Origin: Takakia lepidozioides
Taxonomy: Eukaryota; Plantae; Bryophyta
Length of the DNA: 64,000 bases
Reading direction: 5' to 3'
Assembly: GCA_030704615.1 (NCBI GenBank)
Contig: CM060732.1
Span: 26,598,001 to 26,662,000, forward strand
Position numbers and translations under genes: made by a program. Each line of letters starts with the position of its first letter. The first letter of the stretch is position 1. The notes under the pieces were generated by a model, which had not been told where the DNA came from, ran no database searches, and saw only the letters and a program-made list of their open reading frames with translations. Shown one piece after another: positions 13,941 through 41,968 of the stretch.

Positions 13941-14264
13941 TGCTATTGCAGGGTGGGGGCTTCTATTTCATGAGCGGCATGAGCATGAGCGGAAAAAAAA
14001 AAAAAAACATGAGCGGGCCATTGTGTGTCCACGGAAATAGGGTCATGTGGACTCGTCATAGCAATGAAATGCAACATTTTATTGCAAATTTTGTGGCAAG
14101 CCACGTCTATACAAGTGTCCCCTAACTGACATAGCTCCTACACCTTCCGAGGAACTTGGCCCTCCTTCTTCCTCATCCCCCTCATCCCCCCTATCCTCCG
14201 AGCTTTGTGATGCATCGGTTGCACACTGCCTCTCAAAAATTCCGTCCTCTCCTTGGGGGACTGT

Positions 14265-16495
14265 CTACCTCACCTCCTGGGAATCTTCTGCCTCTTCTCC
14301 CCCACTTTCCTCAGCAGAATCCAAGACAAATCTACGAGCCCGACGGGCTCTAATAGCTGCTGCCTCCTCCCTCATCTTCATTTTCTTGAGGCTTGCCTCG
14401 TCTAAAATCTGTTGTACACGACTAGGTTCGGAACACCTCCTAATGGACACCGAAGCAAGCCGGGCAGCATAAGTATGAAGGATGTAGTCCCTTTCTGGAC
14501 TAGGCATGAAATCCCCCTGGCAAAAAAAGGCACGTTCCTCCTGCCCATGAACTCCGGTGTAGACGTCCCTCCTGCAGTACTTGGCATCCTACAGTAAGAA
14601 CAAATCCACTTCAAGAATGTCAATACCAGCAGAAGCAGAAAGGGTTTTCAATGAAATAGGAGAGCAAAGGGAGGTGCCTAACGAAATCTGGAGGCAACTT
14701 ACAATGCGACCACTCACTCGTAAACCAGGGGCTCCTCGGCCTCGATCCCAACTTGTTCCTCCCCCTGCTCCTTCTCGGATTTTTCCTCATCCTCCGAGGA
14801 TGTCTCTTCCTCTTTGGGTAGACATTCAGCCGCTGCAAGTTCCGAGTTGTGGAGGGCAGTATCTGGCTCGAAGGCGAACACATGCCTGTCGGACAACATC
14901 CCTGCCCACATTGAAGCACCTAAGGAACAAAGCGGGCGGTTAATAGCTTGCGGCATGCAATTGCAATCGGGCCAGGGAACAAACTGAGCACATGAAGGCT
15001 TACCCGTGCCACATGTGAGGTCAAGAATCCGCCCTTGGACATCCGAGCACGTCTCCATGAGGGTTTGGATGAAAACAGGGCTCCGGGTCCGGCTGTACCG
15101 CCACGGTTTGCCTGTCTTTGTGTCCTTCGGCATACTGGAGTGGGGCACATAGTTGTAGAGGACATCGTAGGTAATAGGGTCCACAACAGCATCAACAAGA
15201 CGACCGTCATTGCGGAATTTGAACGTAGACCCTCTCTTCACAAAGCAATATGCCTCAAACACCAATGTCTGCACATCCAACAAAAGAGGGATCAACTCCG
15301 GGATCTAGTTTAGATACACCACAATATGAGGTGAATGCAATAGATTGATAACTTACACTTTGGCCCTCTGTTCGCAACCCCTGTGTATTGATGCAGAACC
15401 ATTTTCTGAGGAGGACCGGGGTGACACTTTTTGGTGTCCATCTTGCCACCACATTCTCTGTGGTCTTCCCTCTTGTGGCAAGGACAACCACACATCCACC
15501 GTCATCCAGGAGCATCCCCGCCAGCCCAAACCCAGCTTTCCAGTAGTCCTCAGTAAACCTGTTCCAGTTGGGCACACCATCCAGGCCCTCCAGCATCTCC
15601 CCATCTGGAATGTCGAGGAGAATCATATCGCAAGCTCTCTCCACCTCCCCCCCCCCCCCCCCGAGTGCTCTTGCAATCCGTGCTCACAGCCGTGAAGAAT
15701 TCCATCATGGCTTCAAAACCAGGGGTGTCTTTAGGTTCTGTACCGGCAGCCCTCTTCTTGGCTTTCCCCTTCTGCTCCGCCAGAGACTTGCTGTGTGCCA
15801 CCTTCTTTGCCCTGGCAGCAAGAGCATCAAGGAAGCTCTCATTGACGCATTGGATGATGGTTGGAGGTTCTAGCTTTGGCTTGTGCGTAAACGTCACCGC
15901 CGAATACTACCGTGTAGGCTCGCCCTCAAATGCCAACTTCTTGGCAGAGCCAGTCCCACTCCGAACTAACTTGGGAACCCGGACGACCGGTGACTTGGTA
16001 GCAGCAGTAGCAGTCGCAGGACCTTGAACAAAGTCGTCGTCCGAGTCACTCCCTTGGGTCCCCTCCTGCGCCTCCTCCGATGCCCCGATGGTTTTCTGTT
16101 TTTTGGGTGTTACTGTACTCACCTGTTTCCTTGTCCTTTTCTTTTGGCCTTTATTCTTCTCATTCAATTTCTCCTGAATTCCTGCCTGAGCAAGCTTTGC
16201 CGCTTTCCTGGAGTTCGCAAGCGCTTTTGCCTCTTTTGGACCCAGCGGAGGCAGCGGAGGCAGCGGAGCCCGGTTTCGTCGGGCCTCAACATCCAGCTTC
16301 AATTGAAACTCGGATGGGTCGAGCGAGCCGGGCGGAAGGTCCACATACCAAGGGCAATCACGCAAATGTTCCAGATGCCACTCCTTCACAATAACGTCAG
16401 TGTACATGGAGTCAGCCCCAGGGTTCCTCCATGCCAGGAAGAATGGTGGCTCGAAAGACAGATGACCTTTCTCCAAAAGGGAGAACTTGCAGTAC
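14265..16495 (-). pseudogene. 3' exons of the ParB-MTase gene: beta-class N4C/N6A DNA-methyltransferase-like domain plus acidic tail
   Basis: CDMILLDIPDG (motif IV-like) precedes RSPVFIQTLMETCSDVQGRILDLTCGTG|intron|GASMWAGMLSDRHVFAFEPD (motifs X-I-II). GT-AG introns at about 15355-15270, 15003-14920 and 14716-14591. Confidence 0.7.
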
Positions 16496-16524
16496 CTGCA
16501 TTCATGAAAAACACAGAATGAGGT

Positions 16525-17265
16525 CCCTGAACTGGAAATTCGGCACCATTTTCCCAGGTTGGGGCGGAATTGACTGGGCCTAGAACTGGAAAAATGGCGC
16601 CGAATTTCGGTTTCGGTGCCAGCCACCCTAGGGACTTAGCCATTTTGGGAGCCCAGAACTGGAAATTTGGCGCCATTTTCCCAGGTCCGGGCCAAAAATG
16701 GCTAAGTCCCTGAACTGACTGGCCCTGGAATTGGAAAAATGGCGCCGAATTTCGGTTTTCGGTGCCAGCCACCCTAGGGACTTAGCCATTTTGGGAGCCC
16801 AGAACTGGAAATTCGGCGCCATTTTCCCAGGTCCGGGCCGAAAATGGCTAAGTCCCTGAACTGACTGGCCCTGGAATTGGAAAAATGGCGCCGCATTTCG
16901 GTTTTCGGTGCCAGCCACCCTAGGGACTTAGCCATTTTGGGAGCCCAGAACTGGAAATTCGGCGTCATTTTCCCAGGTCTGGGCCGAAAATGGCTAAGTC
17001 TCTGAACTGACTGGCCCTGGAATTGGAAAAATGGCGCCGAATTTCGGTTTTCGGTGCCAGCCACCCTAGGGACTTAGCCATTTTGGGAGCCCTAAACTGG
17101 AAATTCGGCGTCATTTTCCCAGGTCCGGCCCGAAAATGGCTAAGTCCCAGAACTGACTGGGCCTTGAACTGGAAAAATGGCGCCAAATTTCGGTTTTCGG
17201 TGCCAGCCACTCTAGGGACTTAGCCATTTTGGGAGCCCTGGACTGGAAATTCGGCGCCATTTTTC
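16525..17265. repeat. 146-bp tandem satellite (about 5 units) built from internal inverted motifs
   Basis: The 146-bp period shows in repeated ORF starts 16772/16918/17064/17210. Each unit has GGGACTTAGCCATTTT/AAAATGGCTAAGTCCC and GAAATTCGGCGCCATTTT/AAAATGGCGCCGAATTTC. Confidence 0.95.
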
Positions 17266-20200
17266 CAAGGACCAATTTTAAGAGAAAGGAGAAGTTGAAG
17301 AGGGATAACTATGAGAAAAGATTGGAAGAAATCTTGAAGAAGTATGCCACAGAGGCTGCAACACATTGGAGGAAGGGTGTATGGTGTGCAAAGTGCCAGA
17401 ATGAAGGCCATACCACCACAGAATGCCACATAAAGGAGAAACACTGTACTATCTGTAAAATGGATAACCATTTTACTGAGAATTGTTACTACAACAGAAG
17501 GACAGCTGCGAGAGAACCTAGGCAAGTAAGGGTGCATCAGGTGCAGCCCCAGCCAAGAAGAAACAATGATCAGGACCACTATGGTAGGTCTGGTGGTTAT
17601 AACAATGGCATGGAAGGGAGAGGTAATTCAAGAGGGAATTACCAAGGAAATTCCAGAGGCAACTATCAGGGTAATCCAAGGGGGAATTACCAGCCCGGGA
17701 ATCAGGATTACAGAAATAATCCAAGAGCAGACCAAGGGCGAGGACCCAATGGTGAAGAACTATGTTACTATTGTAATCAGCCAGGACATCGCAAGGCAGC
17801 CTGTTCATTCTGGATTAGACACCAGAATGAGATGAGAGCTCCTATGAATGAGGGCCCAGTGGTGGCAGCTCACATGGTTAGGCCATGTGTTGTACCAGAA
17901 GTAAGTACAATGATAGTAACAAGAAGTAAAGCCAAACTAATACCTCCAATAGTAGAGGAAGAGGATGATAATCAAGGTGGCAGTGATATGCCTGAAGATG
18001 ATGAGGCTTGGAGAGATGAGAAGGAACTGCACGAGGAAGTGGCAGATACCATAAGGGAAATGCAGAAGAGTACTGATATTCCTATGGCAGATTCCTCTGA
18101 TTCTGATGGAAAAGAAGAAGTGAGTGAGGATAACAGGAAGAAAAAAAATGCAGACATGCAAAGTAATGAAGAGACTTTGGCTGAAGTAATATGCCAGACC
18201 AAAGCAGAGATTACCATTGGACAGCTATTGACTGTGGCACCTTATTGTAGGCACAGGCTGTATCAAGCAATCAATCGAATTGCCCAGGAGACAGGAAACA
18301 CAGACCTGAACAGCAAGGTGACCAGTTATAATGTGAAGCCGGAAGGGCGAGAAACAGTCATGGACTTTGATGATTCTATGCCAGTAATCCAATTGAGAAT
18401 TGGAAGCACAGAACTAACTGATAGATGGAGGTTCTGGAGTAAATATCATGACAGACCAATTAAGAAAGAAGCTTGGTCTAAGTAACATGAAACCAGCCCC
18501 ATTTACAGTAACAATGGCAGATCAAAGAAGTGTACAGCCATTGGGATTAATAAGAGGAGTTAAGATACAGATACAGAATATGATCTTTATGATCACAGTA
18601 ACTGTGTTGAAGATGGATGAAGTCATGGAGGCTTACTCCTTATTATTGGGACGTCCGTGGCTGAAACAGGCCAGGGTATTCCATGACTGGAATTCTCAGT
18701 TACTAACCGTGCATAATGGGATACACGAGAGACAAATTACCACAAAGAAATCTAGTAGATTACCTGCTACGAGAAGACCTCGAGGAGTCAGAGAGTATGA
18801 CTGGAGAGGAGGACTGGATGAGGAGCAGGAAGCTACCATGTTTGCTGCACACCCAGAGTGGGAGCAGGTTGCAGAGATGCGGCTGGAAGGCCTAAGTTGT
18901 TTAAGGGGTATCTGTTGTGGTGTAGTGTCAACAACACCGATTGAAGAGGAAACCAGCAGTTACCCATCACATTTCTATGAAGAAAAGAAGGAGAAATGGA
19001 AATCCTAGAGGAACCAGCCACTGTGAGTTTACAGGATGAAGTGGTGACTGGTTGGACAATCACAGCTGATGAGCAAGTGAGGGAAGTGAATGTGGGAACT
19101 AAAGAGGAACCAAGGATGGTGAAGGTAGGAGCTGATTTGGAGCCAGAATTCTTTGAAGAAGCTAAGAGTTTGTTCATCAAATACAAAGATGTATTTGCTT
19201 GGAGCTATGAGGATTTAAAAGGGATACCACCTGAAATCTGTCAGCATAAGATTGAACTGGAACCGGGGTCAGTACCAATCAAGCAGGCAAGGTACAGAAT
19301 GAATCCCAACTACGCACAGAAGGTTGGAGAAGAGATCAAGAAGTTGGCTGAGGCTAAGTTTATATACCCAATAGAATATACAACTTGGTTGTCACCCATT
19401 GTGATAGTTCCCAAGAAGAATGGTAAACTAAGAGTTTGTGTGAACTACAAGAAGCTGAATGCTTGTACGAAGAAAGATCATTTCCCTTTGCCATTCACAG
19501 AAGCAGTATTAGACACTGTGGCAAGCCATGAGATGTACTCATTCATGGATGGCTTCAGTGGTTATAATCAAGTGCAAGTGGCAGAAGAAGACCAAGGAAA
19601 AACAGCTTCATCACAGACTGGGGTGCTTATGCATACAAAGTCATGCCCTTTGGACTTTGTAATGCACCAGCGACCTTTTAGAGAGTGATAAGTGAATCTT
19701 TTCATGAGTATCTGGATGATTTCATGCAGGTATTCTTGGATGATTTCAGTGTGTACAGCTCTAAGAATGAGCACTTACATAAATTGGAGTTATGTCTGGT
19801 CAGATGCAGGATGAGAGGTCTGGGCCTGAATCCAGAGAAGTGTATTTTTTGTGTGAACTCAGGGGTGCTTCTGGGACACATTGTGTGTAAGAGGGGACTT
19901 CTTGTGGATCCCAGGAAAACAGAGGCCATTAAAGCCTCTCCACCACCAGTGAATGTTAAGAGTCTAAGGAGATTCCTTGGACAAACAAGCTATTACAGAA
20001 GATTTGTTAGACGGTATGCACAGATAGCAGCACCATTGAGCAAACTTCTGAAGAAAGATGCAGTGTTTGCATGGACACCTGAATGTCAACAGGCTTTTGA
20101 GGAACTTACATTGTCAGTAACAACTACACCTGTGCTGATTAGTCCTCACTGGCAGGAAATATTTCATGTTCACTGTGATGCTTCTGGAGAAGCACTAGGA

Positions 20201-21860
20201 GCAGTGTTAGCCCAAAATGTAACAGGAAGGATAGATTCACCTGTGTACTATGCTAGCCGATTGATGAACAATGCCGAAAGAAATTATAGCACAACGGAAA
20301 GAGAAGCATTGGCAATGATCTATGCAGTGAAGAGAATTCAGGCATTACCTGTTGGGCAAGAAGTTTATGTTCTATGTGGATCACCAGGCTCTGATATACC
20401 TGGTAAACAAACCTCTGATAAGCGGAAGAATAGCAAGATGGTTGATAATCTTGCACGAGTTTGAGTTCGAGGTTGTTTACAAGCCTGGGAGACTGCATCT
20501 TGTGGGGATCACTTGTCACGGTAACAACAGGAGAACCAGCCACAGGAGTAGATGATCAATTACCAGATGCGAGTCTATTTGCAGTGGAGGTGCAGGGAAG
20601 TGCAGATGACTGGTTAGATTGGCAGTGGCCAATCAGATACTACCTTGCTCATGGTCAGTGTCCACCAAGTTATGGAAAGGAGCAAAGAAAGAGAATTGCT
20701 AACAAGGCTCTACCTTACACTATGGTAGGGAGCAGAATGTATAAGCTAGGACCAGATGGAGTGTTGAAGCGATGCTTATACCACCATGAAGTTAATAAAG
20801 TTTTGGAGGAAGTTCATAAAGGAGTGGCAGGAGGTCATTTTGGAGAAGAGACTACCAGCAGGAAAATACTACATGCAGGTTACTGGTGGCCTACTTTGTT
20901 CAAAGATGTACACAAGTATTGTCAGAGTTGTGATGAATGTCAGAGGCTATGACCTTTGCAGAGATTTGGGAAAATGTCTTTGCATCCTACAATGCCTACG
21001 AAACCATTTCAGAAATGGGGACTAGACTTTGTTGGACCAATTAACCCACCAGCCAAGAATACACAGAATAGGTACATAATTACAGCCACTGATTATACTA
21101 CGAAGTGGGTGGAAGCTAAAGCTTTGAGGGACAACACAGCCAAGTCCACAGCAGGTTTCTGTATGAGAACATACTTACACGATTTGGCTGTCCCTTGGAA
21201 TTTATCAGTGATCAGGGAAGTCACTTCATTAATGAGACCATTGAATTGTTGACTAAAGAATTCATGATTGTGCATAGGAAGAGTACAACATATTACCCAC
21301 AGGGTAATGGGCAGGCAGAGGCTACCAACAAAATACTATGTACTCTCTTGGCTAAGATAGTCAATGCAAACAGAACGGATTGGGATACAAAGCTGCTGAC
21401 AGCTTTGTGGTCATACAGGACTTCATATAAAGTCACCACTAAGTATACACCATTCAATTAGTTTATGGTATAGAAGCCTTACTTCCAGTGGAATTCTTGT
21501 TACCTACCATGAGAACGGAATGGGAAAAAGAATGGAATTGCAAGATTCCATTAAAGTCAGGAAACATGAATTATACCATGTGGAAGAAGTACGTGCTGAT
21601 GCAGCTGATAATATGACCAGAATTCAGATGAAGAGGAAGGAACAGTTTGATGAAGGCAAGTTAAAGACTTTTAAGACGGGAGATTTGGTTCTATGGTTGC
21701 AGAAGAAAGGAAAGATTAAAGCTTTTAAGCTTAAATCACCATGGAAAGGACCTTATGTCATACAAAAGATGTATGATAACAACACCGCCATGTTACAAAC
21801 CCATTAACAAAGAGATGCTGGGAAGAGTCAAGCTAATAAGTTGAAGGGGTACAGTGGTAT
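17265..21860 (+). pseudogene. gag(3' part)-pol, multiply frameshifted
   Basis: ORFs 17229-18485, 18448-19008, 18996-19688, 19685-20464, 20461-20952, 20956-21252, 21195-21461 and 21520-21807 in the order PR-RT-RH-INT. Confidence 0.93.
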
Positions 21861-22765
21861 CCATGACAAAACCATTGCAGCATGATTTGTTGTTGAAACG
21901 CAAAAGCCAGTCACGGGCTGCGCCAGTACCACGGAGTAAGGAGTATGGAGCACTTGTCGCTAGCCGAGCATATGTGACCAGGGCGGGCAGAACAACGTGA
22001 CACAGCCTATAATAGCCCCTCACGACGCGACACAACTATCACAGCCCATCACGACGGGACACAGCCATCATAGCCATCACGGCGCGACAGCATATCAAGC
22101 CAAGCACAACACAACACAGCCTATCACAACCTACCACAGCCTACTAGGGTTACACAATCCATAGAATCAGTGACAGGTGGACGCAGGATAACTTCAGGAA
22201 ATGGCCGGCGGAAGAAAGGACGGAAGCCAGTTTAGAAAGGGACACGTGGAAGTCAGGGCGCAACACACAGCTGAGAAGGAAGTGCAAGAACGGATGTCAT
22301 CAAGAAAGAGGACAAGAATGGCCGTCAAAATACCTAATTAGCACGTCAATTGGATGAATGGCGGGCCCATTAATGAATACGAAAAGGGGCAACAGAACAA
22401 ACGGCAAGTACAGAAAAGCGAAATTCTTGTCACATGTGTTATCCTAGTGGACAGTCCAGCAGGGAAAGTCCACTAAAGAAAATTAAATCTAAAATCCAGT
22501 CACAGCGGTTACAGCCAATCGAAAGCAGAGAAGGGATCAAGAAATTGGAGGGAAATTAAGCGCAAGAGTCGGCGTCGTTCTAGTAACGGGCGTCTCGACG
22601 GGACAAACCATCAATGCTAGCTTTGAAGCTATGGAGGAACTAACAGACTATACGCTCGCAATTTACTTACGCAGTGGCATAGGGACGAAAGAACAGAGCG
22701 GATCTTTTCTCTTGATCGATGCTTGCAAGCCCCGCAGGCTTACAAGAAATTACCCATAGCTTTTT

Positions 22766-25700
22766 GTGGCAACCATACGTTTATGCTTTGTGCCTCAGGC
22801 ATTTCTTCAATTGTTACAGCCAAAACATTTCTGTGGGTCTAGAATGAAGAGAGTGAGAGGAATGGAGGAAATCAGGGTGAAGAGCACCACAATCCTGCAG
22901 AAACAAACGATTGCTACTCCACAGGCGATACAGTTACTGAAGGAGCTGAGATTGCAAGGATTGCAAAGCAAAGATTGGACATTGCACCATAGACAGTACA
23001 TGTTACAATTCTTGCAGAACTTTGAGCCAAGGACAGGAGCAACAACGGTGAAGGGAGTTGAATTAGTAATTACTCCCCTATACCTACAGCAATTGTTTCG
23101 ATTGCCAGCAGGTCAGGTGCATGTGGAGGAGCACAGGGCAAGACTGCAAATAGGGGACTTATTCCAAGAAGGGAGTTTCTTTAAAACTCAGGGTTATGCT
23201 TGTACCAAGGCCGTGTACCCAGGGCTAAGGAGGTAGGCCAGGTATTGAACGTTCTGTTTGCCATGAAACAGAACCAACAGTATTTGAGCAGATCCTTCAC
23301 AGAGGAAATACTCAAAGCCCTGAGAGGAGAAGAGGTAGAATGGGCGGACATAATGTACAACGCACTGGTAGAGGAGATGAAAAGATTACAGGGTACTGCC
23401 GCAAAGTCTCCTATCATAGTGTCTGGCCAATCATTGCTCAAATAATTCTTGATTCTGGCATACTTGATGCGCGAGAAAGAAAGGAGATGGGAGTGTTTGA
23501 GCCAGAAACCACTGCAATGGAAGAGCAAGGCTCTTCACACAGTGAGGAGGGTGGACTGGCAGGGCAACCCGAGAATAAGAGACAGAGGCGGGGAAAGACT
23601 GTAGTGGCGGATCCACTGGCTTCACGGAATCCGCATGATAATGTTTCCCAAGTTTTTGTGCAGGAAGGGGCACAGCAGCACAGAGGCAGGACCTTCAGAG
23701 AGGGAAGAGGAAGTTACTTCAGTATCACAGCCATCACAGCCAGAGGATCGGCTTGTCACAAGGTTACCACAAGTTGTCCATGCAGTTCAACCAGAAATAA
23801 TTGATTTGAAAAAGAAGGGTTAGATATTCCCACTACAGAACAGGTGGTGGCAGAAATTGAGAAGGGGGACCTTCTCTATGAATATTCTGGTATGGTCAGG
23901 ACACAGTGATTCCGGAGGTGCAACTTGTCCAGGGGAAACCCTGCGGTGCATATAATACACACACCTGTGACGGAGGTACCACAGGTAGAATGTCAAGACA
24001 CTGCAACCGGTGACGGATGAAGTGGTTCAGGAAGAAAATCTGGTGGGGCAATGGCCTGAATGGTTCGTAAGGCATCACACTGTTGAGGATCAGGGAGAAC
24101 AGCAGCAAGCTCACCATGATGACCCTCAACAGGCTATGCTTATGAGTTCCATAAGCAGGACACTTAATTTGTTGGGTACTTATGTCAAATCCCATGTTCC
24201 CACTACTCAATTGGCAGCTTTGAGGGAGGAACTCAGGAAGGAGTTTGAGGCTCGACTTGCCACAGAGTGTGCAAACAAGGTCGATGAAGAGGTCACTCTC
24301 AAAATGCAGCAAGACTTGGAGAGTACAGAAGCGGCTTTGCAATTGGCCAAGGAACAATTGATTGAGGCAGGCCTCGCACAAGACCACTTGCACGAAGCAC
24401 ATAAGCAACAGCTATACCAAATGCAGGTGAAGCATGAAAGCAAGTTGCAAGAAGTGAATGCACTACATATGGAGTTGCAGACAGTGCATGACAGGATGGC
24501 CATACAATGTGCTACACTCACAACTATGCTTGACCAATCTACAAAAGAAATAAACAGTCAAGCGGAAAAATGTACGAAGGCAGAGGAAGAGAATGTTGAG
24601 CAAATGAAACTCATTGTCGATATGAAGAATACAATCTGTCGCAATGAGGATACTTTCAAGCAATACAGGCAGGTTGAAGCTGACCAAGAGAGGCACATCC
24701 TGGAGTTGCAACAAACGGTCATGGCCAATAGAAATGAAATCTCGGTCACTAACAAGCTTGGAAGGAAGCCAATAATCTGCTTGCTGCCTATGCGAATTTG
24801 GTTGAACCTCATGCGAAGCGCATGGAGGCTTTACAACAGCAGTTAGATGTGTACAAACTCAGAGAGGAGCACACTCTCAGAGGAACCACAAGCAACTTGG
24901 TGGATAACCACCTTATGCAGGTCTGGTTAGCACAAGGGCCAGTGGAGGGCAAAGCACCACGAAAGCTCACCCAAAGCGAGATGAATGAGCTCAGACTGCA
25001 AGTGCAGAACATTGCCACAACTACTATAGACAATGTCTATAGTAGGATAGCGGAGTTACAGGAGGATGTAGACGGCCTGCAGACTCAAGTGGAGGACCTC
25101 ACTTCAAATATCGACAAAGAGAGTCTATATACCTGAGGAACAGCTAATGGCTTCTTATTTACAAGCCAGAACTTTGGCTTTTCAGTCTTCTTCACAGGAG
25201 GTGCAGGAGATGCCAATGATACAAGAGCCAGTGCCACCAACACCACAACAAGTCACTGTGCCAGTAGCTGACCCTGTTGTTACTACAGCCACACCACAGC
25301 CACCACAGCCTGAGGTATGGGGAAATGCTGCTTTTAACCCACCTAAAACTCCAGCTACAGTAGGGCTATGATTATGCCCTTCAACCAAATTCCCATTGTG
25401 TTGGATTTGGTTTGGAAAGAATTTAGTCCTCCGCAGTCATTGGCACATTACTATCAAATCATGCGCATTGGCTGCCAGTGGCAACTAGGACTAAAGTTCT
25501 TCCGAACAATCGACCAATTGAGGATCATCACTTTGCACAGTACTGGCATGAGGCAGGTACCATGTTGAAGGAATTAATTGCTTCCAAGTTGTACATGGAT
25601 TCATTTATACCAAGACCAAGGAGGTAGCAAGTATTGTCATGGGATGCGGGTTATACTACGCTGCTTGTTTTCTGGTACGTTATCACATTGAGCAGCACAA

Positions 25701-26352
25701 GATGCAATCGCGCTTTCTGAGTTATTCCAGTGGGGATCATTGGGTCTTACCTTCAGTGCCACCTCATATGTACCTATATGAGGCAAAAGTTATGATACAA
25801 AAGATTCTCAAATTCGTTCATGGTTTCATGCGGCCTGGAACAATTTGTCAACACAGAAATTCGGCCTGATGATATTTTCTTTAAGGACATGAGGCATGGA
25901 AATACTTGCACAATTCACAAGTCATTGGTTCCTCACCTGGACAGACAAGGAGCTCAGGGTCTTCACCAATTTTGGCCACCAAAGTTTTAAAGTTTAAACT
26001 TCCAGACATGGTAGGACAACATTGTATGCCCCAGAGGATTCCACAAAAAGTTCGACAATTAAAACACCTGAGAGGCGATGAGGATTCTGATACAACTGTT
26101 TCTTCAGCGGACTCTTTTGACATGGGAGAAGACTATGCAATCAGATGGCAGAGAAGAAGCGACGGGGGTCTCCTATGCCTGAAAGGTTACCTCGATATCA
26201 GCCTCCAGAGGGCCTCACATATCCAGGTAGTGTTCAATCATCTCCGTCAACCAGTGACAGACCTCGGGCTCGTACACACAGTCCGCCACGAACTCTCAAC
26301 GTCAGAAAGGTGCTCGCTCACAAAGGTTTGCTAATCCCAATCAGTAAACCGT
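22766..26352 (+). pseudogene. Extra sense-strand ORF(s) between integrase and the 3' LTR, including a long coiled-coil; function unknown
   Basis: Overlapping ORFs 22766-23236, 23200-23445, 23340-23804, 24010-24846 (E/Q/L heptad-rich) and 24798-25136 lie inside the element. Confidence 0.6.
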
Positions 26353-26385
26353 GAGGACACGGCTTTTTGAGAGGGGAAGGGGTAA

Positions 26386-27363
26386 TGTTAGAGGACTGTC
26401 TGGGACTTAGACACTTATACGGGATCTGTGGGGTACCCTTAATTTTTGCACAGACTGAGACCAACAGGAGCCTTAGGGGTGACAGCAGCGCACTTTAGGG
26501 GGGGTTACACAGCCCGTCACAGACACAGCCGACACACCCACACAGCACACAGACAAGTCACAGCCAACACAGCTCACAGTCACAGTCGCTTCACAGCCAC
26601 ACACCACACAGTCGCACAGCCAGTCACAGCTCACAGCCTCACAGTTTCACACAGCCAGTCACAGCTTGACACAGCTGTCACGACCATAGGGAACGGATAG
26701 CAGAACAGGGAACGACTGTGGGGAACAACACCTGCGAAGGGAACATGTTAGTTCGGATGACGGTTAGTGAGGGAAACGTTAGAACAACGGGTAGGAAGAT
26801 AAAGCTAGGAGCAAGGACTGGAAAAGATCAATTCTTGATCACTTCGGGGGGAATCACTGCTGGAAGGAGTGGGAGGAGCACTTCTTGGGGAAGACTTCGT
26901 CACTGGGGAAAGGAGGAGAGAGCGTATCTCTGAGCAGAAAGAGGGAGAGCACGGAGTAGGAGGAGGATCTGTTGATGCTTAATGAATGCAGGCAGTAGAA
27001 TTGTAATGTAGAGCAGATTAGAGACTCCATGGCTTCAGCCTGATACTTGATAGATATTAATCTGATACACACTTCATACTCACACTGTGTAGAGAGATCT
27101 GAGTGAAACTGTGGAATGAATGGATGAGTTGATGGAATCCGATAGATTGATGAAGCAAACTGATACTTAATTACCAACAATAAGGTAACTAGCTAACATG
27201 AATGCGGGAAGGAAAACAAATAGGAAACACCCCCATGATACACTAGCTGTAGGTCATGACTGATTGTTCTGAGCGGGTTGAGTACTTAGAGATTTCCAAC
27301 TCTTCTATCTTGGAGTTTTCGCCTCGGATAGCGAAGGGATGGGTGAGTAAAAGCCGCGCGACA
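26386..27363 (+). repeat. 3' LTR (TG...CA) followed by TSD CCCCC at 27364-27368
   Basis: TGTTAGAGGAC...GCCGCGCGACA, homologous to 41969-42918 and preceded by the PPT. Confidence 0.95.
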
Positions 27364-28160
27364 CCCCCTGCTTCCCGACATCCTTCACTCGGAAGAGCAT
27401 ATGGGACAAGTTGGTGGCAATGAAGGCATTCTCAGTCACCCTGCAATGCCATTTCCATCAAACAATACTGAAATGGGAATTTTCAACAAATATGAGGATT
27501 CGCAATGAAATGACTTACAAATTTGGGGTCCAAAAGCAAGAGGCATTGTAACTTACGAGTTGATGTTCGCCATTGCAGCTTTGAGAAGACTGCGATCTTT
27601 GGGCCCCGCAACCTTCAGCACAACACACTCCGCGGCGAAATGCCAATCGAGGTCGTTGGGGTGGGCTTCGGCTATGTGCTCCATCCATGCCAGGAGGCGA
27701 TGATTGCCGTCCCACACGTAAAACATCTTTTCCGGACAAGTGTTGGAAAAGAGATCAGTAGCAATCGATCTCTCAAACTCCTCATTTCGCCTTTTGCCAA
27801 TGGGGACCCCATTTGTCCACCTCAACGGAAGTTGTGGGCACGGGAAGCTCTGTGGTTCGTTCTCAATGGAAACGTAAAACGCGGCAGACCCCATTCGATA
27901 TCCATCCCGGAAAGAGAATTTCAGCTTGTCGATATCGCCTGGGAGGGCAGGTCTCACCACTTGCAATGACACCAAGCGGCAAAGGGGAATTCGAAAGCTT
28001 GGCCGGGTACACCATGCCCCCTAGCACCCTGCCAATGTTGCTGTGGGTTGCCTCCAACATCTTGGCAGCGGCCAACTTCATATCCGCCTCCGACATGACG
28101 TCTGCTGCAGAGGGGTTCTCCGGCAGCCCACCAGGACCGCCAAATCCAGCCTGTATGCTG
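27364..28160 (-). pseudogene. ParB-like gene copy B fragment (gene-5' side of the LTR insertion)
   Basis: Homologous to about 33787-34580; encodes VRPALPGDIDKLKFSFRDGY...FYVWDGNHRLLAW. Confidence 0.85.
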
Positions 28161-28162
28161 CC

Positions 28163-31100
28163 TGGGGGGTGCACTCTTTATAACTGTGCGTATCACGTGG
28201 CGTTCGTCGCCTAATAAAAAAAAACCCCCTGTATACGGGTCCTTGGATAATTTATATTTATACCCCCTCTGTACATACTTTTTGAAGATTATAAAACCCC
28301 CTCCTGTAAATATACAAAATTTATAATTTTTAAAAAGTACCCCCTGTATGTATATTCTCATTTCCATCATTAAAAATAACCCTCCAATATGTATATGTAT
28401 GATTTTATATTATATCGAATTTATTCATTTAAAACATAATAAAATCTAACAAATTAATTAAAAAAATTATTTGCCTTTGATAAAGTTGTCAAGACTTTTC
28501 GTCATTTTGCATCAAGTACATATGTGTTGACTTGACATTGTACTTTAAACATGCTAACGCGATAATGGAATCCAAATCAACCATCATGTTATCCGTCAAA
28601 TCGTACGTATAGACCCCCTCCTCGAATTTTTTGGTAACCACGCTAACCCAATCTCCATATGAGAAGGACGTTCCAATAAATCACAGAAATCCCTACCATT
28701 CTACAAACCGCTTTATTGATTTCTTCCCGCATTCTTTGAAACCCTGCCCAAAATACCAAGTGTCTTTGGTTTGCTCCTCTGCAGGTTTCCCTGGTCTACC
28801 TTTCCTGTTTGTAGTTTTGGATCGCAGTCGCTCCTCATCAACAAAAAATACAGCACAATCCGAACCCAATCCCAAGCTCGTGGCTTTGTTGCTGGTAGTT
28901 GGTTTGTTTTCTCGGCAAAACAACATCGATGCACTTCTTACTCGTGTCAATCTATCCTTGGATAGAGTAGGGTTGCCATTGAGTTGGCTAACCAAAGTGC
29001 TTTTGAATATGGTCTTCCCGTCTACTTTGACAAATGGAACCACCACCTTCGATCCATCTTTCTCTTGTTCAAACTCATCAATGACAGCATCCAGAGTATG
29101 TCTCAATTCACTTTGAATAAGTACCTCTTCCGCATGATCATCCAAAGGTTGGCTCAAAACATCCTCCATTGAATTCGAAGGCCCGCACACCAATTCATCT
29201 TCCACGACCTCATTTTGAATATGTGTGTCTGCATTAAGAGGACAAATAGAATCTATGGCATCGACATCATCACCCTCCTCTTCCATGCTTTTGAATAGCT
29301 CGGCCTCCATTTTGTCTCTCAATTGTCCATGGCTCATTCCACCAATCCAAGTTTGTCGCTTTGTTTGGTTTCATCCCAAGTTTATGGCATAAAAGTTGCG
29401 CTTCTAGAAATCCAGTTTTCAAAGCCTCCACAATGCAATCATCCGATTGGACAGTAGAAAAGTCGGACAAATCAGCAAGGGGGATACCTGGCTTCTTCTC
29501 CAAAGAAACCAAATGTTCTTGTTTCTTGTGAGCTCTTGAGAACTTGGGTCCTTTTGGATTCACCTCGAACTCGGATATGCGTGTTAATGCTCCCGCACTC
29601 TCAATCAAATCACACCCGTCATATGTCCTCTCATTCCGTAACATACCTCCCACTTTGCTGAAGAATATTTCACACACATCTGAACCAACAAGGCTCAAAG
29701 GAACTTGCACATGATTAAACTTATCCTTGAACAATTTGATAAGTAGAACCACGTAGTGGCATGAAATTTGTAAATCCAAGTATGCTTCCCTGCTAATGAA
29801 GAAGGATTTCAGATTATACACCTCGTGGTGGAATAACCACAACTTCCACAATCTGAAAAAAAACGATACCTTCGCAGCAGATTGTACCCTCTCACACAAT
29901 GACATGTGAGGAGACAAAAAAATGTCGATGTAGCATGAAATGATGTATAGGTAAAATTCAGTACCTTTGGTCCTCTCCCTTCGATGATTGACAGTTGATT
30001 GTAACTCCCTCAAACAAGCTTGCACCTTCCGAGATGCCAGTCGTTGAGCTGCTGCCCAATTCTGTCGATCTTCTCTTTTGATATCACATTCCCGAAGTCC
30101 ATGCTTGTCCACTGAAAATGAATGGTAGACCAATAACACATGATTCAATGTAGCAACCTCATCCCCAACACCAAAGTCCGTGATGCACTGTCCAAGGGAT
30201 TTACCAATTTTTTCCCATTGTGGATGAAGTCCTGATCATGGAGTCCGTATATATCTCCCCCGTTGCACACTCGACCTGTAAACAACCATCCTTCCCAAGG
30301 GATGCAAAATCTACTTCCAGCCCATTGGCATAATCTTCTAACATCACTTTTCTTCTCCTACTATCTCCGTCTGAAGCATGCCCAATTATAGGCCCAACCA
30401 CGTCCCTCACATATTTGTCCCACAACTGTCTCACCACTTCCCATTGTGATCTCACAAAATTGTTGTCAAATCTATTGCAAGTGAGCTGGATTACCAATAC
30501 CAATCGAGGTAATCGTACATGTAGAGGATTTGCTATCAACACTCTGGCGTAATGGGCAACCACATTGTTTTTGAATGCCTCCACAATATATTCGTACCCT
30601 GATTCCCCTTCTCCCACTTGCACCACAAAATTTGAAATACATACATGGTTGTCTTGAAGCCCACAGAACCCGAGAAGGGTGTCATCCCTAGCAATCCAAC
30701 GTACCAATCGCTTCACAATAGTTTCATCTTCGGCCACCATCACTGGGATGCTTCCCATTGGAATATTTGCATCTTCCATCACATCCACATGCTGAAATAT
30801 ATCATCCATTTCTCCCACTCTATACTTCAAACCTTTCCTCAAAGACCGTCTTGTAGTATCAATAGAAGGACCCCTCACATTTGAAGCCAAAAAATGATGC
30901 AATCTCGGACCCCCCCAAAGCTGCACAGTCTCAAACATTGTTTTTGTGCTAGTACCATGCCTCTTCCTTTGTGGAGACCTGTCAATATTCTTGCCCATAT
31001 CAACAATAAAATCCCACAAACTTTCTTTTCCTTCAAAATCCCCCCTCCTATGTGCATCAACAATATCACGACAAAATTTGAGAACATCTCCTCTTTCAAT

Positions 31101-31926
31101 TGCCTCAATCCCAGACTCCTTCAAACTCCTACATCGCACAGACAAGGATGCCACTTTGGTCCTGGCCTCCCACAATTTGAACCTCAACTGCCTCAACTCC
31201 TGTCTGTTTTTGTAAACTTGTTTGACAATCTCGACATTTCCAAGATATGACAACCTTCTTCCCTTGCCAGTATCTCTCTCCCCTCTATATTCCATGGCAC
31301 CTCTCTCTATATATACCCTCATTCTGAAGTCATTTTCCAAGGGAATGGAAGAACATGCTGAACACCTCAAGTTTGGAAATGGCTCCCCATCCAATGACAC
31401 TCTAAAACAATCCGCGTGCCGAAACGTACCAACAACCTTATGCTCTTGATTGTTTAGAGTGATGATTGCATGTGTCAACGGCTCGACATACCACTTCTTT
31501 CCTCCCTTGCTATCTTGAAGGAATGGTTTCAGACTTATTCTCTTGTGGTTGTACTCCCACCATTCATCCCATAGGCCCCAACACAAACTGTCTCTTCCTT
31601 TGTTGCATTGGGACCTTCGCTATAATTGTCAATCCTCAATCAGATCTGCCCGTTGGGCAACGTCAACACAAGTGTAGGGAGTTTGTGACGAGGATGCTCC
31701 CATTGTTGATGCCACAATTGGATTGTCAAGTGGTGGGGACGGCAACACAGGTTGACTGACCAAGAAAGAGCTTAGATCCCGTTGCTTTACATCTTTGGCA
31801 ATCATAGGCTTTGGAGGCCTTCTTCTCTTTTTGCACAGTCCTTCACTACTTCCAACCTTCTGGCAAATCTCTGCATCGACATGAGTTTTTCCTTTCACAT
31901 GCTCTGTCAAAGAAGATTGCAAAGAA
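28163..31926 (-). mobile_element. P-element-like transposon copy 2, 5'-truncated, frameshifted transposase (stop at 28467)
   Basis: Near-identical to 8145-11819. ORFs 30201-31586, 29270-30148 and 28693-29337 carry the same DDE motifs. Retains about 100 bp that is deleted in copy 1 near 11155. Confidence 0.85.
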
Positions 31927-32335
31927 TGTGGATGAACCGCATGACATGGTGGTTTCAAGTACTTCCCCATGCTTCGTTTGGGGCTTCTACTCTAGTAGGG
32001 GGTGGATTCATTGTATTTTTTCAAGAAAGCGATCTGATGGAGAATCTCCACAGGTGACGACGAATGCGCAAGAGCAGCTGGACACACAAGCACATCAGTT
32101 CAAGATGGAGATATCTCCTGCAGCAGAGAGCCTACGTGACTATGTGACGAGGTACTTTCTGCTCTACAAAACCAACCTATTTTTTCGGGAGATAGCAGAT
32201 GCTTGCCGGAGCCACGAGTTCACCGACCAGCCGAACGCGGACAAAGCAGCAATGCGCCTTCTATACAGGTACATACGCGCTGCCTTTCTTTGAAGTCCTT
32301 GCATTTCAGGATGTTAGAAGCCTCATGTGGTGTTA
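31927..32335 (+). pseudogene. Inverted internal exon of the ParB-MTase gene, ending at donor TACAG|GTACAT (32268)
   Basis: Reverse-complement homologue of 40904-41296; continues the gene from the break at 33125. Confidence 0.85.
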
Positions 32336-33127
32336 GGGAAAATGGCGCCGAATTTCCAGTCAGGGCTCCGAAAATGGCGAAGTCCCTAGATTGGCTGGCC
32401 CTAAACTGGAAATTCGGCGCCATTTTCCAGTTCTAGGCCCTATTGCCGTTCAGGGACTTGGCCATTTTGCTAAGTCCCTAGACTGGCTGGCCCGGAACTG
32501 GAAATTCGGCGCCATTTTCCAGTTCCAGGCCCTATTGCCGTTCAGGGACTTGGCCATTTTCGGCCTAAGTCCCTAGACTGGCTGGCCCTGAACTGGAAAT
32601 TCGGCGCCATTTTCCAGTTCCAGGCCCTATTGCCGTTCAGGGACTTAGCCATTTTCGGGCTAAGTCCCTGGGGTGGCTGGCCCCGAAGTGGAAATTCGGC
32701 GCCATTTTCCAGTTCCAGGCCCTATTGCTGTTCAGGGACTTAGCCATTTTCGGGCTAAGTCCCTAGGGTGGCTGGCCCGGAACTGGAAATTCGGCGCCAT
32801 TTTCCAGTTCTAGGCCCTATTGCCGTTCAGGGACTTAGCCATTTTCGGGCTAAGTCCCTAGGGTGGCGGGCCCCGAAGTGGAAATTCGGCGCCATTTTCC
32901 AGTTCTAGGCCCTATTGCCGTTCAGGGACTTAGCCATTTTCGGGCTAAGTCCCTAGGGTGGCTGGCCCTGAACTGGAAATTTGGCGCCATTTTTCCAGTT
33001 CTAGGCCCTATTGCGGTTCTGGGACTTAGCCATCTTCGGGCCAAACCAGGAAAAATGGCGCCGAATTTCCAGTTCAGGGCTCCCAAGATGGCTAAGTCCC
33101 TAGGGTGGCGAGTCACCGAAAACCGAA
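32336..33127. repeat. 95-bp tandem satellite (about 7 units) grading into the 146-bp unit type
   Basis: CTAAGTCCCT recurs at about 32470, 32565, 32660, 32755, 32850 and 32945. 33045-33127 matches the reverse complement of about 17185-17266. Confidence 0.93.
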
Positions 33128-36100
33128 TGTGGGGTCAGAGAGTTTGTCCGGTTTGGGGAAGCTCCACATGTCCCTGGTACTTTGGGAACCATACCGGGTC
33201 TGTCCAACCACCCAGCATATTCGTAAGCGCCAAACACCACAAAAGGAGTTGTTGCCACCACAAGTTGGTTAAGAATGTATCATCTTTTCTGTTGCATCCA
33301 CACAGGATGTGGCTAGACGATGGAGCTTCTCCAATGTCATCGTGGGCTTCAGAGCGCGAGAGTAGTGCTTCCCCACCTCCACCAGAAAAAGTCGGCACCA
33401 AGGGCGGGATCAGCTATGGCCACGTACTTTACCATCCGCGACTTGTACTTTATGCGGGCCCTCACCTCCGCAGCTTTGACATACGATTCGAGTTCCGGGA
33501 GGGTTGGATTCTTCTCCTCTGACTCCATGTAGAACCTCCGCGCATGTGCCAAATCCTGTTGTATTTTCGTCTGTCAAGAATGCGCACATAAGATTAGAGA
33601 TCTTGCTCAACACAATTTCTTCTATTGGGGGAGGAGAGACAGATTAGCTCAACAAAACGGTCAGGAGCTTTACCCGAAATATGTAGTCCACCATGGCGTT
33701 GACGCTCAGCCTATACCAGGTTCTGTCTGCCTTTGCCTCCGACTTGCACAGGAGGTTGGCACTGAGGGAATTGGCAAACTCTTGCACCCCCTGCTTCCCG
33801 ACATCCTTCACTCGGAAGAGCATATGGGACAAGTTGGTGGCAATGAAGGCATTCTCAGTCACCCTGCAATGCCACATTTCCATCAAACAATACTGAAATG
33901 GGAATTTTCATCATATATGAGGATTCGCAATGAAATGACTTCCAAATTCAAAGTCCAAAAGCGAGAGGGGTTGTAGCTTACGAGTTGATGTCGGCCATTG
34001 CAGCTTTGAGAAGACTGCGATCTTTGGGCCCGCAACCTTCAGCACAACACAATCCACGGCGAAATGCCAATCGAGGTCGTTGGGGTGGGCTTCGGCTATG
34101 TGCTCCATCCATGCCAGGAGGCGATGATTGCCGTCCCACACGTAGAACATCTTACCGGACAAGTGCTGGAAAAGAGGATCACTAGCAATCGATCTCTCGA
34201 ACTCCTCATTTCGTCTTTGCCAATGGGGACCCCATTTGTCCACCTCATCGGAAGTGTGGGCACGGGAAGCTCCGTGGTCGTTCTCAATGGAAACGTAAAA
34301 CGCGGCAGACCCCATTCGATATCCATCCCGGAAAGAGAATTTCAGCTTGTCGATATCGCCTGGGAGGGCAGGTCTCACCACCTGCAATGACACCAAGCAG
34401 CAAAGGGGAATTCGAAGCTTGGCCGGGTACACCATGCCCCCCAACACCCTGCCAATGTTGCTGTGGGTTGCCTCCAACATCTTGGCAGCGGCCAACTTCA
34501 TATCCGCCTCAGACATGACGTCTGCTGCAGAGGGGTTTTTCGGCAGCCCACCAGGACCGCCAAATCCAGCCTGTATGCTCCGGGTTTGGGGCCTGGGGAT
34601 GTCCGGGAGGATGTCATCCTGTCGTCCTCCTCAACATGGTCAGCCACCTGCAAAACCACCTCCAGCACTCTCCCCGTCTCTACTGCCCTCTCCCTGGCTT
34701 CACCTCGAACTTGCACAATCCGTGCTCTTTCTGGTGTTCTTTCCTCTCCTCCACTCTCCACCGTATGGGTAATTGCGGGGGCTGCTCTTGCCCGCGATGG
34801 TCTAACCGGTGTGTTACTGCCTCTCTGTGGTGTCTTGGAGGGATCCACCGTCTCTGTGCGTCCCTCGCTTACATTGGCATCTGTCATTTGGGCACCCCTG
34901 GCCTCTTCAGTGGCCTTTTCTCTTTCCTCCTGGCTAGCATTCTATCTTGCCTGTTCTTTTGCCCTCTCTTTTGCCCTCTCACGGGCTTTCTGTTTCTTAC
35001 TAGGGCTAGCAGCAGGGGAGCCCTCCAGGACGACCACCTTTGATTGAGGCGAACTGACACCCTCGCGCGCACTGCTCACTCCCCCCTCCGCAGCCCGTGA
35101 CGGCTCTCTCGCCGAGGATTGCATGTGCTTAGCTTTCTTCTTTTTCTTTGCGTGGGCGGGCCCTACTGCATGTGCATGAACAACCTCCATTGCCGGATCT
35201 GCTGTCCTCATGTCCTCACGCCCTTCACCTGCCATGCCGCCTGCACCAACCTCCCCAATGCCTATTCTGCCGTACTCTCGTTGCAAGTCCTCCCGTCCAC
35301 CAACAAAAGGTTGAAGTTTGCCCTCTCGCCCCAAGTTGGGCGATTCAAACATGCGATGAGTTGGAGCTGTCGATGATACCACCAGCGTGCCGGGCTCGTC
35401 GTCACTCTGTCATTCCCAAAAATCGTGAAAACCAACATCGGTGCAAAAACCAGCACCGCAATGAGCAGCGCAACCACCATAGCAACAATCGTGTAACAAA
35501 AATGAAAACATAACAAGTTTAGGAAGTATGGAGAGCCATGCACAACAATGAAAACATATGCAACAATTGCCTGAGAATGACATGCACAAGCAGCCTTCTC
35601 CACAGCTGCCGGATTTGCACACGCATTGCAAACAATGTAAGGTTCACTCAACTATCTAAAGTTCACTCATCCAGCGAAGCCAGGATGAAGATGCAAAAAC
35701 AAAGCGAGGCAACAAAGCGAAAGCAAAAAAGAAATCGAACAAAGCGAAAGCAGAAGTGGCTTGCCTGAGAGTACTCGGCTTCAGTTGACGCGGGTTGTGA
35801 GCAAGACACTGGAATCTCTTGCTGGAGCTTCAGTTTGGCCATGTGAGAGATTGGCCGTCGTCCGTAGTACAGAGCTTTCAACTTCCGCCGCGGTCTGGAT
35901 GTGAGGTCTCTCTCAGGAGAGCCACGCCCTTCAGGCGGCATAAGTCCCAGCCAAAATGGAAAAAGATCTCCGTTTTTGGGGTACATGCCTCGAATAGCAT
36001 GTTAAGCCAAGATTAGCATGAGATTTAGGGTACGTATCCAGGAAGCCATGTGTCGCCAGCCCGAATGAAAACCGACGGCGGTGGACATTTATTGCCCAAC

Positions 36101-36132
36101 TGCGCAATTAAATGTCGGATGAAGCCCTCCAT
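33125..36132 (-). pseudogene. ParB/Srx-like domain gene copy A, 5' exons (low-complexity N-terminus, ParB-like domain, helical region)
   Basis: LRIPLCCLVSLQVVRPALPGDIDKL...GKMFYVWDGNHRLLAWMEH (DGxHR motif). Donors at about 33981 and 33674. The upstream exons from ATG 36132 are tentative. Confidence 0.7.
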
Positions 36133-36149
36133 GTCGGATGAAAATCGAC

Positions 36150-36450
36150 GGAACTCGGCCCGGAATTTCCAACGTAGAGGTAATTCGGAGCGCTGCGGGA
36201 TGGAAATCCGGCGCCGGATTTCCATCCTGCAAGTAATTCGGAGCGCAGCAGGATGGAAATTCAGCGCCGAATTTCCATCCTGAGGGGTAGGGCGGCACGC
36301 GAAATTTCCCTCAAGCAGGTAATTCGGAGGCGGATGGATGGAAATCCGGCGCCGAATTTCCATCCTGCAGGCAATTCGAATCCCTGCTGGATGGAAATCC
36401 GGTGCCGAATTTCCATCCAGCAGATAAGTGGAATCCCGGATGGATGGAAA
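36150..36450. repeat. Array of about 30-bp palindromes GGATGGAAAT(C/T)CGGCGCCG(A/G)ATTTCCATCC
   Basis: Perfect palindrome at 36198-36227; variants at about 36251, 36336 and 36389; a truncated copy at about 36442. Confidence 0.9.
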
Positions 36451-40903: not shown

Positions 40904-41968
40904 TCTAATATCCTGAAATGCAAGGACTTGAAAGGAAGGCATCGCGTATGTACCTGTACAGAAGGCACATTGCTGCTTTGTCCGCGTTCGGCTGGTCGGT
41001 GAACTTGTGGCTCCGGCGGGCATGGGGTATCTCCCGAAAGATTATGTCGGTTTTGTACAGCAGGAAGTACCTCGTCACATAGTCGCGTAGGCTCTCTGCT
41101 GCAGGAGAAATCTCCATCTTGAACTGATGTGCTTGTGTGTCCAGCTACTCTTGCGCATTCGTCGTCACCTGTGGAGATTCTCCATCAGATCGCTTTCCTG
41201 AAAAAATACAATGAATCCACCCCCTACAAGAGTAGAAGCGCCAAACGAAGCGTGGGGAAGTACCTGAAACCACCATGTCATGTGGTTCATCCACATGTCG
41301 AATGTGGGTCAGACAGTTTGTCCGGTTTGGGGAAATTCCACATGTCCCTTGTACTTTGGGAACAATTCTAGATTTGGAGCCACCGGGTCTGTCCAACCAC
41401 CCAGCATATTCGTAAGCGCCAAACCCACAAAAACGAGTTGTTGCCACCACAATTTGGTTAAGAAATGTATCACCTTTTCTGTTGCATCCACACAGGATGT
41501 GGCTAGACGATGGAGCTTCTCCAATGTCATCATGGGCATCAGAGCGCGGGAGTAGTGCTTCCCCACCTCCACCAGTCGGCACCAAGGGCGGGATCAGCTA
41601 TGGCCACGTACTTTACCATCCGCGACTTGTACTTTATGCGGGCCCTGGCCTCCGCAGCTTACGATTCGAGTGTCGGGAGGGTTAGATTCTTCTCCTCTGA
41701 CTCCATGTAGAACCTCCGCGCATGTGCCAAATCCTGCTGAATTTTCGTTCGTCGTCAAGAATGTGCACATAAGATTAGAGATCCTGCTCAACACTTTTTC
41801 TTCTATTGGGGAGGAGACAGATTAGCTCAACAAAATGTCAGGAGCTTTATCCGAAATATGTAGTCCACCATGGCGTCCATGCTCAGCCTATACCAGGTTC
41901 TGTTTGCCTTTGCCTCCGACTTGCGCAGGAGGTCGGCACTGAGCGAATTGACAAACTCTTGCACCCCC
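40904..41968 (-). pseudogene. ParB-like gene copy B fragment (gene-3' side of the LTR insertion), ending in TSD CCCCC at 41964-41968
   Basis: Homologous to 33125-33791 plus the reverse complement of 31927-32320, here uninterrupted. Confidence 0.88.

Follow-up and report, generated by a model that had tools for sequence, protein, structure and literature searches.

Fragments of a multicopy, spliced ParB-methyltransferase-like gene in the genome of Takakia lepidozioides suggest an accessory gene of seed-free-plant DNA transposons

The window analysed here, a stretch of 64,000 nucleotides from the moss Takakia lepidozioides (assembly GCA_030704615.1, contig CM060732.1, positions 26,598,001 to 26,662,000), contains pieces of two or three copies of a gene for a ParB-methyltransferase-like protein. 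We interpret them, with a probability of roughly 0.72, as remains of a multicopy, spliced accessory gene of DNA transposons of seed-free plants, the window copy being a pseudogene. The protein would combine an N-terminal domain of the ParB/sulfiredoxin (Srx) type with an invariant GNHR loop, a long helical linker and a C-terminal domain derived from beta-class DNA amino-methyltransferases, the latter keeping a motif I-like loop for S-adenosylmethionine (SAM) and a motif IV of the form D-h-P-x. The gene appears to carry its own 22-bp palindrome twice, in an upstream array and in the satellite of one intron. The family would represent a bacterial or phage-type ParB-methyltransferase architecture in the form of a spliced, expressed plant-transposon gene with palindrome arrays in cis. 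This locus adds transcript-level proof of the gene model (run X1, which supplies it, being taken as RNA by inference), a clear pairing of upstream and intronic palindrome arrays, and a clean negative for linkage to a P-like transposase.

Structure and splicing of the gene

The stretches 36132-33125 (minus strand), 31927-32268 (plus strand) and 16495-14714 (minus strand) are parts of one spliced gene. That the first continues into the second had been proposed in the initial annotation of this DNA, and a second copy (copy B, 40904-41970) indeed has the join unbroken, with a reading frame that continues across the join in both copies. The splice sites proposed for the next join were equally borne out, by an uninterrupted metagenome contig (L003) and by a contig of run X1: the donor (32268) reads ctatacag/gtacat, the acceptor (16495, minus strand) tgcag/gtactg. 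They join exon A to exon B through a split codon AG/G, giving ...AAMRLLYR/YCKFSLL. In L003 an intron of 127 nt occupies this position in the same phase (tacag/gtaatg...tgcag/atat); the exon before it aligns to the end of exon A, the exon after it to exon B, starting with the first residue. The X1 contig runs through 15696-16498 and then the reverse complement of 32239-32265, which is exon A spliced to exon B. A second X1 contig is spliced at 15357/15268 and 15004/14919 (GT..AG, minus strand), removing introns 15356-15269 and 15003-14920, both of which had been predicted from the sequence before this contig showed their splicing. The parts of the gene, its upstream array and its additional copies are the following.

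36140-36460, no strand: upstream array of about six palindromes at 53-bp spacing (core GGAAATTCGGCGCCGAATTTCC, arms extended to 30-38 bp)
34517-36132, minus: presumed 5' region, low-complexity N-terminal coding sequence with no homolog match; the ATG placed at 36132 by the initial annotation is putative
33911-34516, minus: exon of the ParB/Srx domain (open reading frame, ORF, of 201 aa, with WDGNHRL); conserved core 34423-34037
33125-33886, minus: middle exons; homologs match 33859-33776, 33540-33388 and 33376-33284, and several stops are present (introns or decay)
31927-32268, plus: exon A, in the opposite orientation to the 5' part, up to the GT donor 32269
32269-33123, plus: broken intron, 5' half; satellite of 95-bp units at 32376-33041, with one palindrome half-site per unit
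16496-17267, minus: broken intron, 3' half; satellite of 146-bp units at 16567-17267, then the AG acceptor at 16497-16496
15357-16495, minus: exon B (YCKFSLL...) to the motif IV-like DIPD (15614-15603), interrupted by TAG at 15909-15907 and shifted by +1 in the G16 run at 15662-15647
15269-15356, minus: 88-nt GT..AG intron, spliced out in an X1 contig
15004-15268, minus: exon with the motif I-like ILDLTCGTG (15028-15002)
14920-15003, minus: 84-nt GT..AG intron within motif I, spliced out in an X1 contig
14714-14919, minus: last exon of the methyltransferase domain (ASMWAGMLSDRHVFAFEPD...), to the TGA 14716-14714
14265-14713, minus: 3' region; X1 is spliced here at a 114-nt intron (14702-14589), and one nucleotide is missing at 14512 in comparison with all other copies
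40904-41970, minus: copy B, middle exons and exon A joined unbroken, 90-93% identity, one in-frame stop
27362-28159, minus: copy C, second ParB-exon fragment, between a long terminal repeat (LTR) and the end of copy 2 of the P-like transposase

Single window exons or natural full-length homologs served as queries in the searches for relatives. Among 1.84 billion representatives, 482 are relatives of the 201-aa ORF at 33911-34516. In the uninterrupted contigs L001 (from ENA), L002 and L003 (both from JGI), the counterparts of 34423..33284 are followed in order by those of 16407..14837 (both stretches on the minus strand of the window). Full-length relatives from the liverwort Riccia (P0153, 1,207 aa) and the fern Adiantum (P0063 and P0129) match both 34414-33998 and 15656-15480 (minus strand) and contain WDGNHRL-type motifs with D-x-P-x-G motifs further on; they link the two halves. 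The protein encoded by intact relatives has about 1,000-1,200 aa. The three motifs from which the reassembly started, DGNHRL in the 201-aa ORF, DIPD and ILDLTCGTG, are all present in the window. Self-BLAST, copy B, the homologous contigs and the spliced X1 contigs all show that the pieces belong to one gene. It has introns and many copies and is part of a mobile family, and chance is excluded, since the ParB exon has so many relatives in the databases and full-length liverwort and fern relatives match both halves of the gene.

Self-BLAST places the additional copies precisely. Copy C (27362-28159) equals 33785-34579 at 95%, and copy B is made of 31926-32318, matching 41296-40904 in inverted orientation, and of 33124-33793, matching 41299-41970 in direct orientation. 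In gene coordinates copies B and C overlap by 9 bp (33785-33793), and an LTR-like sequence present at 26386-27163 and again at 41969-42807 adjoins both of them, as would be seen if both had once flanked a single insertion and had later been moved apart by rearrangement. A gypsy-type LTR retrotransposon lies beside copy C (17268-27361, with a gag ORF containing CCHC at 17229-18485). The region upstream of the gene, where relatives have a divergent partner gene, is cut off in the window by a gypsy element at about 36470.

The ParB/Srx domain

As modelled, the DGNHRL exon encodes an N-terminal domain of the ParB/Srx, nucleotide-binding type, in agreement with the fold first suggested from its motif. 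The AlphaFold (AF2) model of ORF 33911-34516, built on an alignment of 56 relatives, has a predicted local distance difference test score (pLDDT) of 82. Practically all of its top Foldseek matches are sulfiredoxin, ParB, Noc, KorB, PadC and SbnI, with weak E-values (0.02-0.2), and VIA-align superposes it on the N-terminal domain of Caulobacter ParB (7bm8_A) with a Z of 9.0 and a root mean square deviation of 2.2 Å over 95 residues, and on sulfiredoxin with a Z of 6.9. The phosphate-binding G-x-x-R / DGxHR loop of the superfamily is present as WDGNHRL. Among the 56 sequences, N130 of this loop never varies, and the conservation of G129, H131 and R132 is 90% or higher. Pfam ParBc (PF02195) matched neither the window ORF nor any of 10 homologs. 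The GNHR loop is invariant in relatives across liverworts, ferns and moss-like contigs.

The methyltransferase-like domain

The C-terminal domain very likely descends from beta-class amino-methyltransferases, as indicated by profile searches and by a structural model. When a family hidden Markov model is compared with all PDB sequences, CcrM comes first (E 0.0021), followed by M1.HpyAVI (0.003) and then other beta-class enzymes, and the 22 top Foldseek matches of the model of the Riccia domain P0154 (pLDDT 52) are all beta-class DNA amino-methyltransferases (CcrM at 7e-6). Riccia paralogs score 23.7-26.2 bits against PF01555, for a gathering threshold of 26.7, and four paralogs have precomputed PF01555 matches. 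The motif IV region precedes motif I in the window, Riccia, Adiantum, L001 and L003 alike, so the beta-class order noticed at the outset, DIPD upstream of ILDLTCGTG, is shared by the relatives. Motif I of the family reads D-(L/F)-x-x-(G/S)-x-G-A-(S/T). The UniRef label of “trimethylguanosine synthase” (TGS) on Riccia paralogs was rejected, their motif order being permuted and TGS-type enzymes being absent from the profile matches.

Standard amino-methyltransferase chemistry appears doubtful for this domain. Across the family alignment motif IV reads DLPT, DLPS, DMPS, DVPF, DFPI or DMPE, with DIPD in the window, that is D-h-P-x, and the canonical (D/N/S)PP(Y/F/W) is found in no member seen. The initial annotation had pointed out that DIPD is one base from DIPY; as the last position varies within the family (T/S/F/I/D/E), no recent loss of a catalytic tyrosine is implied. 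Since D-h-P-x extends to the whole alignment, the departure of the catalytic loop from the canonical form characterises the family and is no recent one-base lesion of this copy. An active DNA N6-adenine (N6A) or N4-cytosine (N4C) methyltransferase marking the DNA of the element would agree with the beta-class homology and the conserved motif I-like G-x-G loop, with the transcription of family members and with the annotation of the algal counterparts as N4C/N6A methyltransferases. The sequences nevertheless make it unlikely, as every member seen (DLPT, DLPS, DVPF, DFPI, DIPD, DMPE) has a motif IV without the second proline and the aromatic residue. A SAM- or DNA-binding module, or an atypical enzyme, is more likely than a standard amino-methyltransferase.

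Palindromes and satellites

The 14-nt half-site of the 22-bp palindrome GGAAATTCGGCGCCGAATTTCC occurs 25 times in the window, for 0.01 expected, and palindrome sites are found in three places only: the upstream array (36202-36414) and both halves of the satellite in the broken intron (32344-33070 and 16534-17258). The presence of related satellite on both sides of this intron, reported from the first reading, is confirmed in the orientation of the gene, at 32376-33041 after the donor and at 16567-17267 before the acceptor. Both the break and the inversion of the window copy end in this intronic satellite.

Two other palindromes were recorded. A palindrome TGTTTCATATATGACACA is present three times at 17929-18882 of locus L011, about 6 kb downstream of a Riccia gene of the ParB family, and an isolated, near-perfect 26-bp palindrome (CCGGTTATGCATATGTGCATAACCGG) stands at 7764-7789 of the window, just beyond the end of the P-like unit.

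State and expression of the window copy

The window copy is a pseudogene, and the earlier suspicion that it may be dead is upheld by several lesions: the gene is in separate pieces, it reads TAG at 15909-15907 where contigs of all four public runs have CAG, its G16 run (15662-15647) is one base out of frame, the frame being restored in an X3 copy with four fewer G, and it has lost the C after 14512 that is present in all other copies. Being dead and rearranged, it is a poor substrate for functional work. Over 14200-16700, the window has A/T where contigs of the four public runs have G/C, and the differences are dominated by A>G and T>C. From this excess against the other copies it follows that the window copy has accumulated C-to-T changes, a bias that would fit methylation-driven C-to-T decay of a silenced copy.

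The contigs of the runs are about 95% identical to the window and therefore represent other copies. Introns 15356-15269 and 15003-14920 are kept in contigs of X3 and X4; with spliced contigs in X1 and intron-retaining contigs in X3 and X4, X1 behaves as RNA and the two others as DNA. As judged from these sequences, the gene family is transcribed and spliced through other copies in the same organism, which does not necessarily apply to the window copy.

A divergent partner gene in the relatives

The Riccia locus L010 and the ENA contig L001 share another, divergently transcribed gene upstream (L010 4146-8113 and L001 2921-4762, both minus strand), which is conserved, cysteine-rich, without Pfam family and multicopy in Riccia. 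In at least seven places in Riccia, a locus tag of this partner is only 1-3 genes away from that of a ParB or methyltransferase gene (for example R1sor_001607 with 001606 and 001605, 024554 with 024551, and 008799 with 008801). An Atlas search returned no usable match for it and Pfam only ZSWIM1-3 RNaseH-like, at E 0.18. This divergent gene is probably the real transposase partner.

The multicopy partner also bears on the alternative that the genes form a domesticated host family with no transposon involved. The conservation of relatives in liverworts, ferns and moss-like contigs and the invariant GNHR loop would suit such a family. However, the family is highly multicopy, with 482 representatives and dozens of Riccia paralogs, its copies are decayed and nested among retrotransposons, their differences are biased to C-to-T, and it is linked to another multicopy gene; we consider domestication most improbable and retain the transposon accessory gene.

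The P-like transposase and the cargo question

The initial annotation regarded the gene as possible cargo of a large undescribed element mobilised by a P-like transposase. This transposase does lie downstream of the gene in the same orientation (ORFs from about 12793 to 8457, minus strand), and self-BLAST reveals two copies of its unit, 8138-11819 being equal to 28158-31926 at 96-99%:

8141-12793, minus: copy 1, decayed P-element-like (TNP-like RNase H) transposase, a neighbour outside the gene
28161-31926, minus: copy 2, 96-99% identical to 8138-11819, without the N-terminal part

Members of the transposase family are found in Calypogeia, Adiantum, Riccia and metagenomes, and the family has no Pfam annotation. 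In an Atlas look-alike search the transposase scores 0.94 to clusters of TNP-like RNase H (PF21787), a profile that matches 2 of 13 transposase homologs, weakly (best E-value 0.0027), and the transposase-family profile has no match in the PDB. On these sequence comparisons, “P-like” is best taken as a lead for the identity of the neighbour. The transposase family (window 8141-12793; loci L006-L009 and L012-L046) is widespread in liverworts, ferns and moss-associated metagenomes, and may constitute an unclassified plant branch of the P/THAP9-like superfamily.

The cargo proposal draws on the position of the gene, whose 3' end precedes the transposase by about 2 kb in the same orientation, on the presence of fragments of both gene and transposase in two places, and on the movement of red-algal accessory genes between transposon superfamilies. 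It did not survive the comparison of loci. None of 39 transposase loci (4 loci and 35 metagenome loci, 315 kb), at least 14 of which have 5 kb or more upstream, contains a member of the ParB or methyltransferase family, and none of seven ParB-methyltransferase loci (L001-L005, L010 and L011) contains a P-like transposase, the relatives having the other, divergent partner instead. An unrelated repeat, also present at 46-47 kb and 55-57 kb, occupies the interval 13004-13938, the 22-bp palindrome is absent from the transposase unit, and no terminal inverted repeat (TIR) was found in the window, where the unit end at 8141 has no inverted match anywhere. Moreover, the two adjacencies of gene and transposase are not independent: at the 28159/28161 junction the end of the transposase unit is joined to the ParB position equivalent to 34579, as expected from one tandem duplication, so that they are probably a single adjacency, duplicated. 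The differing flanks at 8141 and 28161, considered as a sign of two independent insertions, are explained equally well by the tandem duplication and were not used as evidence. We therefore regard cargo of this transposase as very unlikely; the latter is a separate element, and its link with the gene looks accidental.

Possible role of the protein

For the accessory gene of another DNA transposon, which we favour, a mechanism can be sketched. The ParB-type protein would recognise the palindromes of the element in a parS-like manner, and would act on the chromatin or DNA of that element itself, either for self-recognition or against silencing. The intronic satellite that holds one set of these palindromes is the site where the window copy broke and was partly inverted. 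Tentatively, we propose as a possible scenario that the ParB-methyltransferase-like protein of these land-plant transposons loads on its own 22-bp palindromes, in the promoter and in the intron, and marks or shields the element from silencing, the D-h-P-x domain serving as an atypical writer or reader. If true, this would be a eukaryotic, transposon-borne analogue of the bacterial ParB/parS systems. The combination of architecture and palindrome arrays suggests transposon self-recognition or anti-silencing by analogy with algae, for which the idea has been proposed.

Several points weigh against this interpretation of the gene and of its role. The TIR and target-site duplication ends of a gene-carrying element were not found, and array scans revealed no recurrent palindrome arrays in the loci of the relatives L001, L002 and L010. 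Palindrome binding is speculation, since the model covers the ParB N-terminal domain only. Each window exon searched alone, with Pfam and with phmmer against the PDB, gave no match. The AlphaFold model of the methyltransferase domain is poor (pLDDT 52) and is that of the Riccia homolog P0154, another protein than that of the window; with VIA it reaches Z 6.7-7.5 over 150-178 residues, beta-class enzymes not ranking above unrelated alpha/beta folds. Finally, the RNA nature of X1 is deduced from its spliced contigs only.

Comparison with known systems

ParB, Noc and KorB of bacteria are CTP-dependent DNA clamps loaded at palindromic parS-type sites. The plant protein shares with them the fold of the N-domain (Z 8.6-9.0) and a GxxR-type loop, and has 22-bp palindrome arrays in cis; it differs by having no Pfam ParBc match, and the likeness was established for the N-domain. 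With CcrM, M1.HpyAVI, M.RsrI, M.MboIIA and the bdelloid N4CMT (PMC8885841), it shares the permuted order of motif IV before motif I, and CcrM, M1.HpyAVI and other beta-class enzymes are the best profile and Foldseek matches of its domain. Unlike in these enzymes, the catalytic (D/N/S)PP(Y/F/W) is replaced by D-h-P-x, and scores are near or below the family thresholds.

Contrary to the qualification of the element as undescribed, ParB-DNA-methyltransferase accessory proteins of giant transposons have been published for brown, red and green algae; our literature search on such accessory genes found no land-plant paper. In the brown alga Ectocarpus, the 21.5-kb transposon Sola1-1_Ec32 encodes a 1,104-aa accessory protein, ParB-like and N4C/N6A methyltransferase, which was proposed to bind and modify its own element (PMC12477816). 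The plant protein is likened to it by architecture, with a ParB-like N-terminal part, a DNA methyltransferase C-terminal part and a similar size. The carrier in Ectocarpus is however a Sola1 element, with the gene on the strand opposite to the transposase, whereas the present family belongs to a land plant, with a non-canonical motif IV and palindrome arrays both upstream and inside an intron.

The giant Plavaka elements of red algae encode PAG3 (ParB and 2-oxoglutarate, 2OG, oxygenase) and PAG2 (N6A methylase and SET) (10.1101/2025.02.11.637652; Curr Biol 2025). PAG3 adjoins tandem inverted-repeat arrays, and accessory genes move between transposon superfamilies (10.1101/2025.02.11.637652). 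The gene described here resembles PAG3 in having a ParB N-terminal domain and an adjacent inverted-repeat array (36140-36460, and the intron). In the PAG system, though, the partner of ParB is a 2OG oxygenase and the methylase belongs to a separate, SET-fused gene, whereas ParB and methyltransferase-like parts are here in one polypeptide.

Fusions of a ParB-type domain to an amino-methyltransferase are also known from phages and prophages, at ParB-terminase loci, and from chlorophytes and chytrids, as fusions of ParB-helix-turn-helix (HTH) with a Dam-type part (PMC4738411). The phage and prophage genes differ from the present one in being prokaryotic or viral, compact and intronless, and the chlorophyte family in being Dam/group 2 and not beta-class. 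By analogy, a phage or prokaryotic ParB-methyltransferase is plausible as the putative ultimate source.

Other features of the window

The window, from a seed-free land plant, is rich in repeats and includes PPR-DYW genes and gypsy elements. Its nearest protein relatives are from the liverworts Riccia and Calypogeia, Adiantum ferns and moss-associated metagenome contigs. A repeat of about 570 bp, partly tandem, is present at 13004-13938, 46609-47750 and 55727-57454, and sits between the end of the methyltransferase gene and the transposase, then again beside the PPR-DYW genes. A large inverted duplication with 92.6% identity (48155-50859 versus 55016-52264) holds PPR-E-DYW editing-factor genes, and the ORF at 52940-54049 has PPR, E, E+ and DYW domains.

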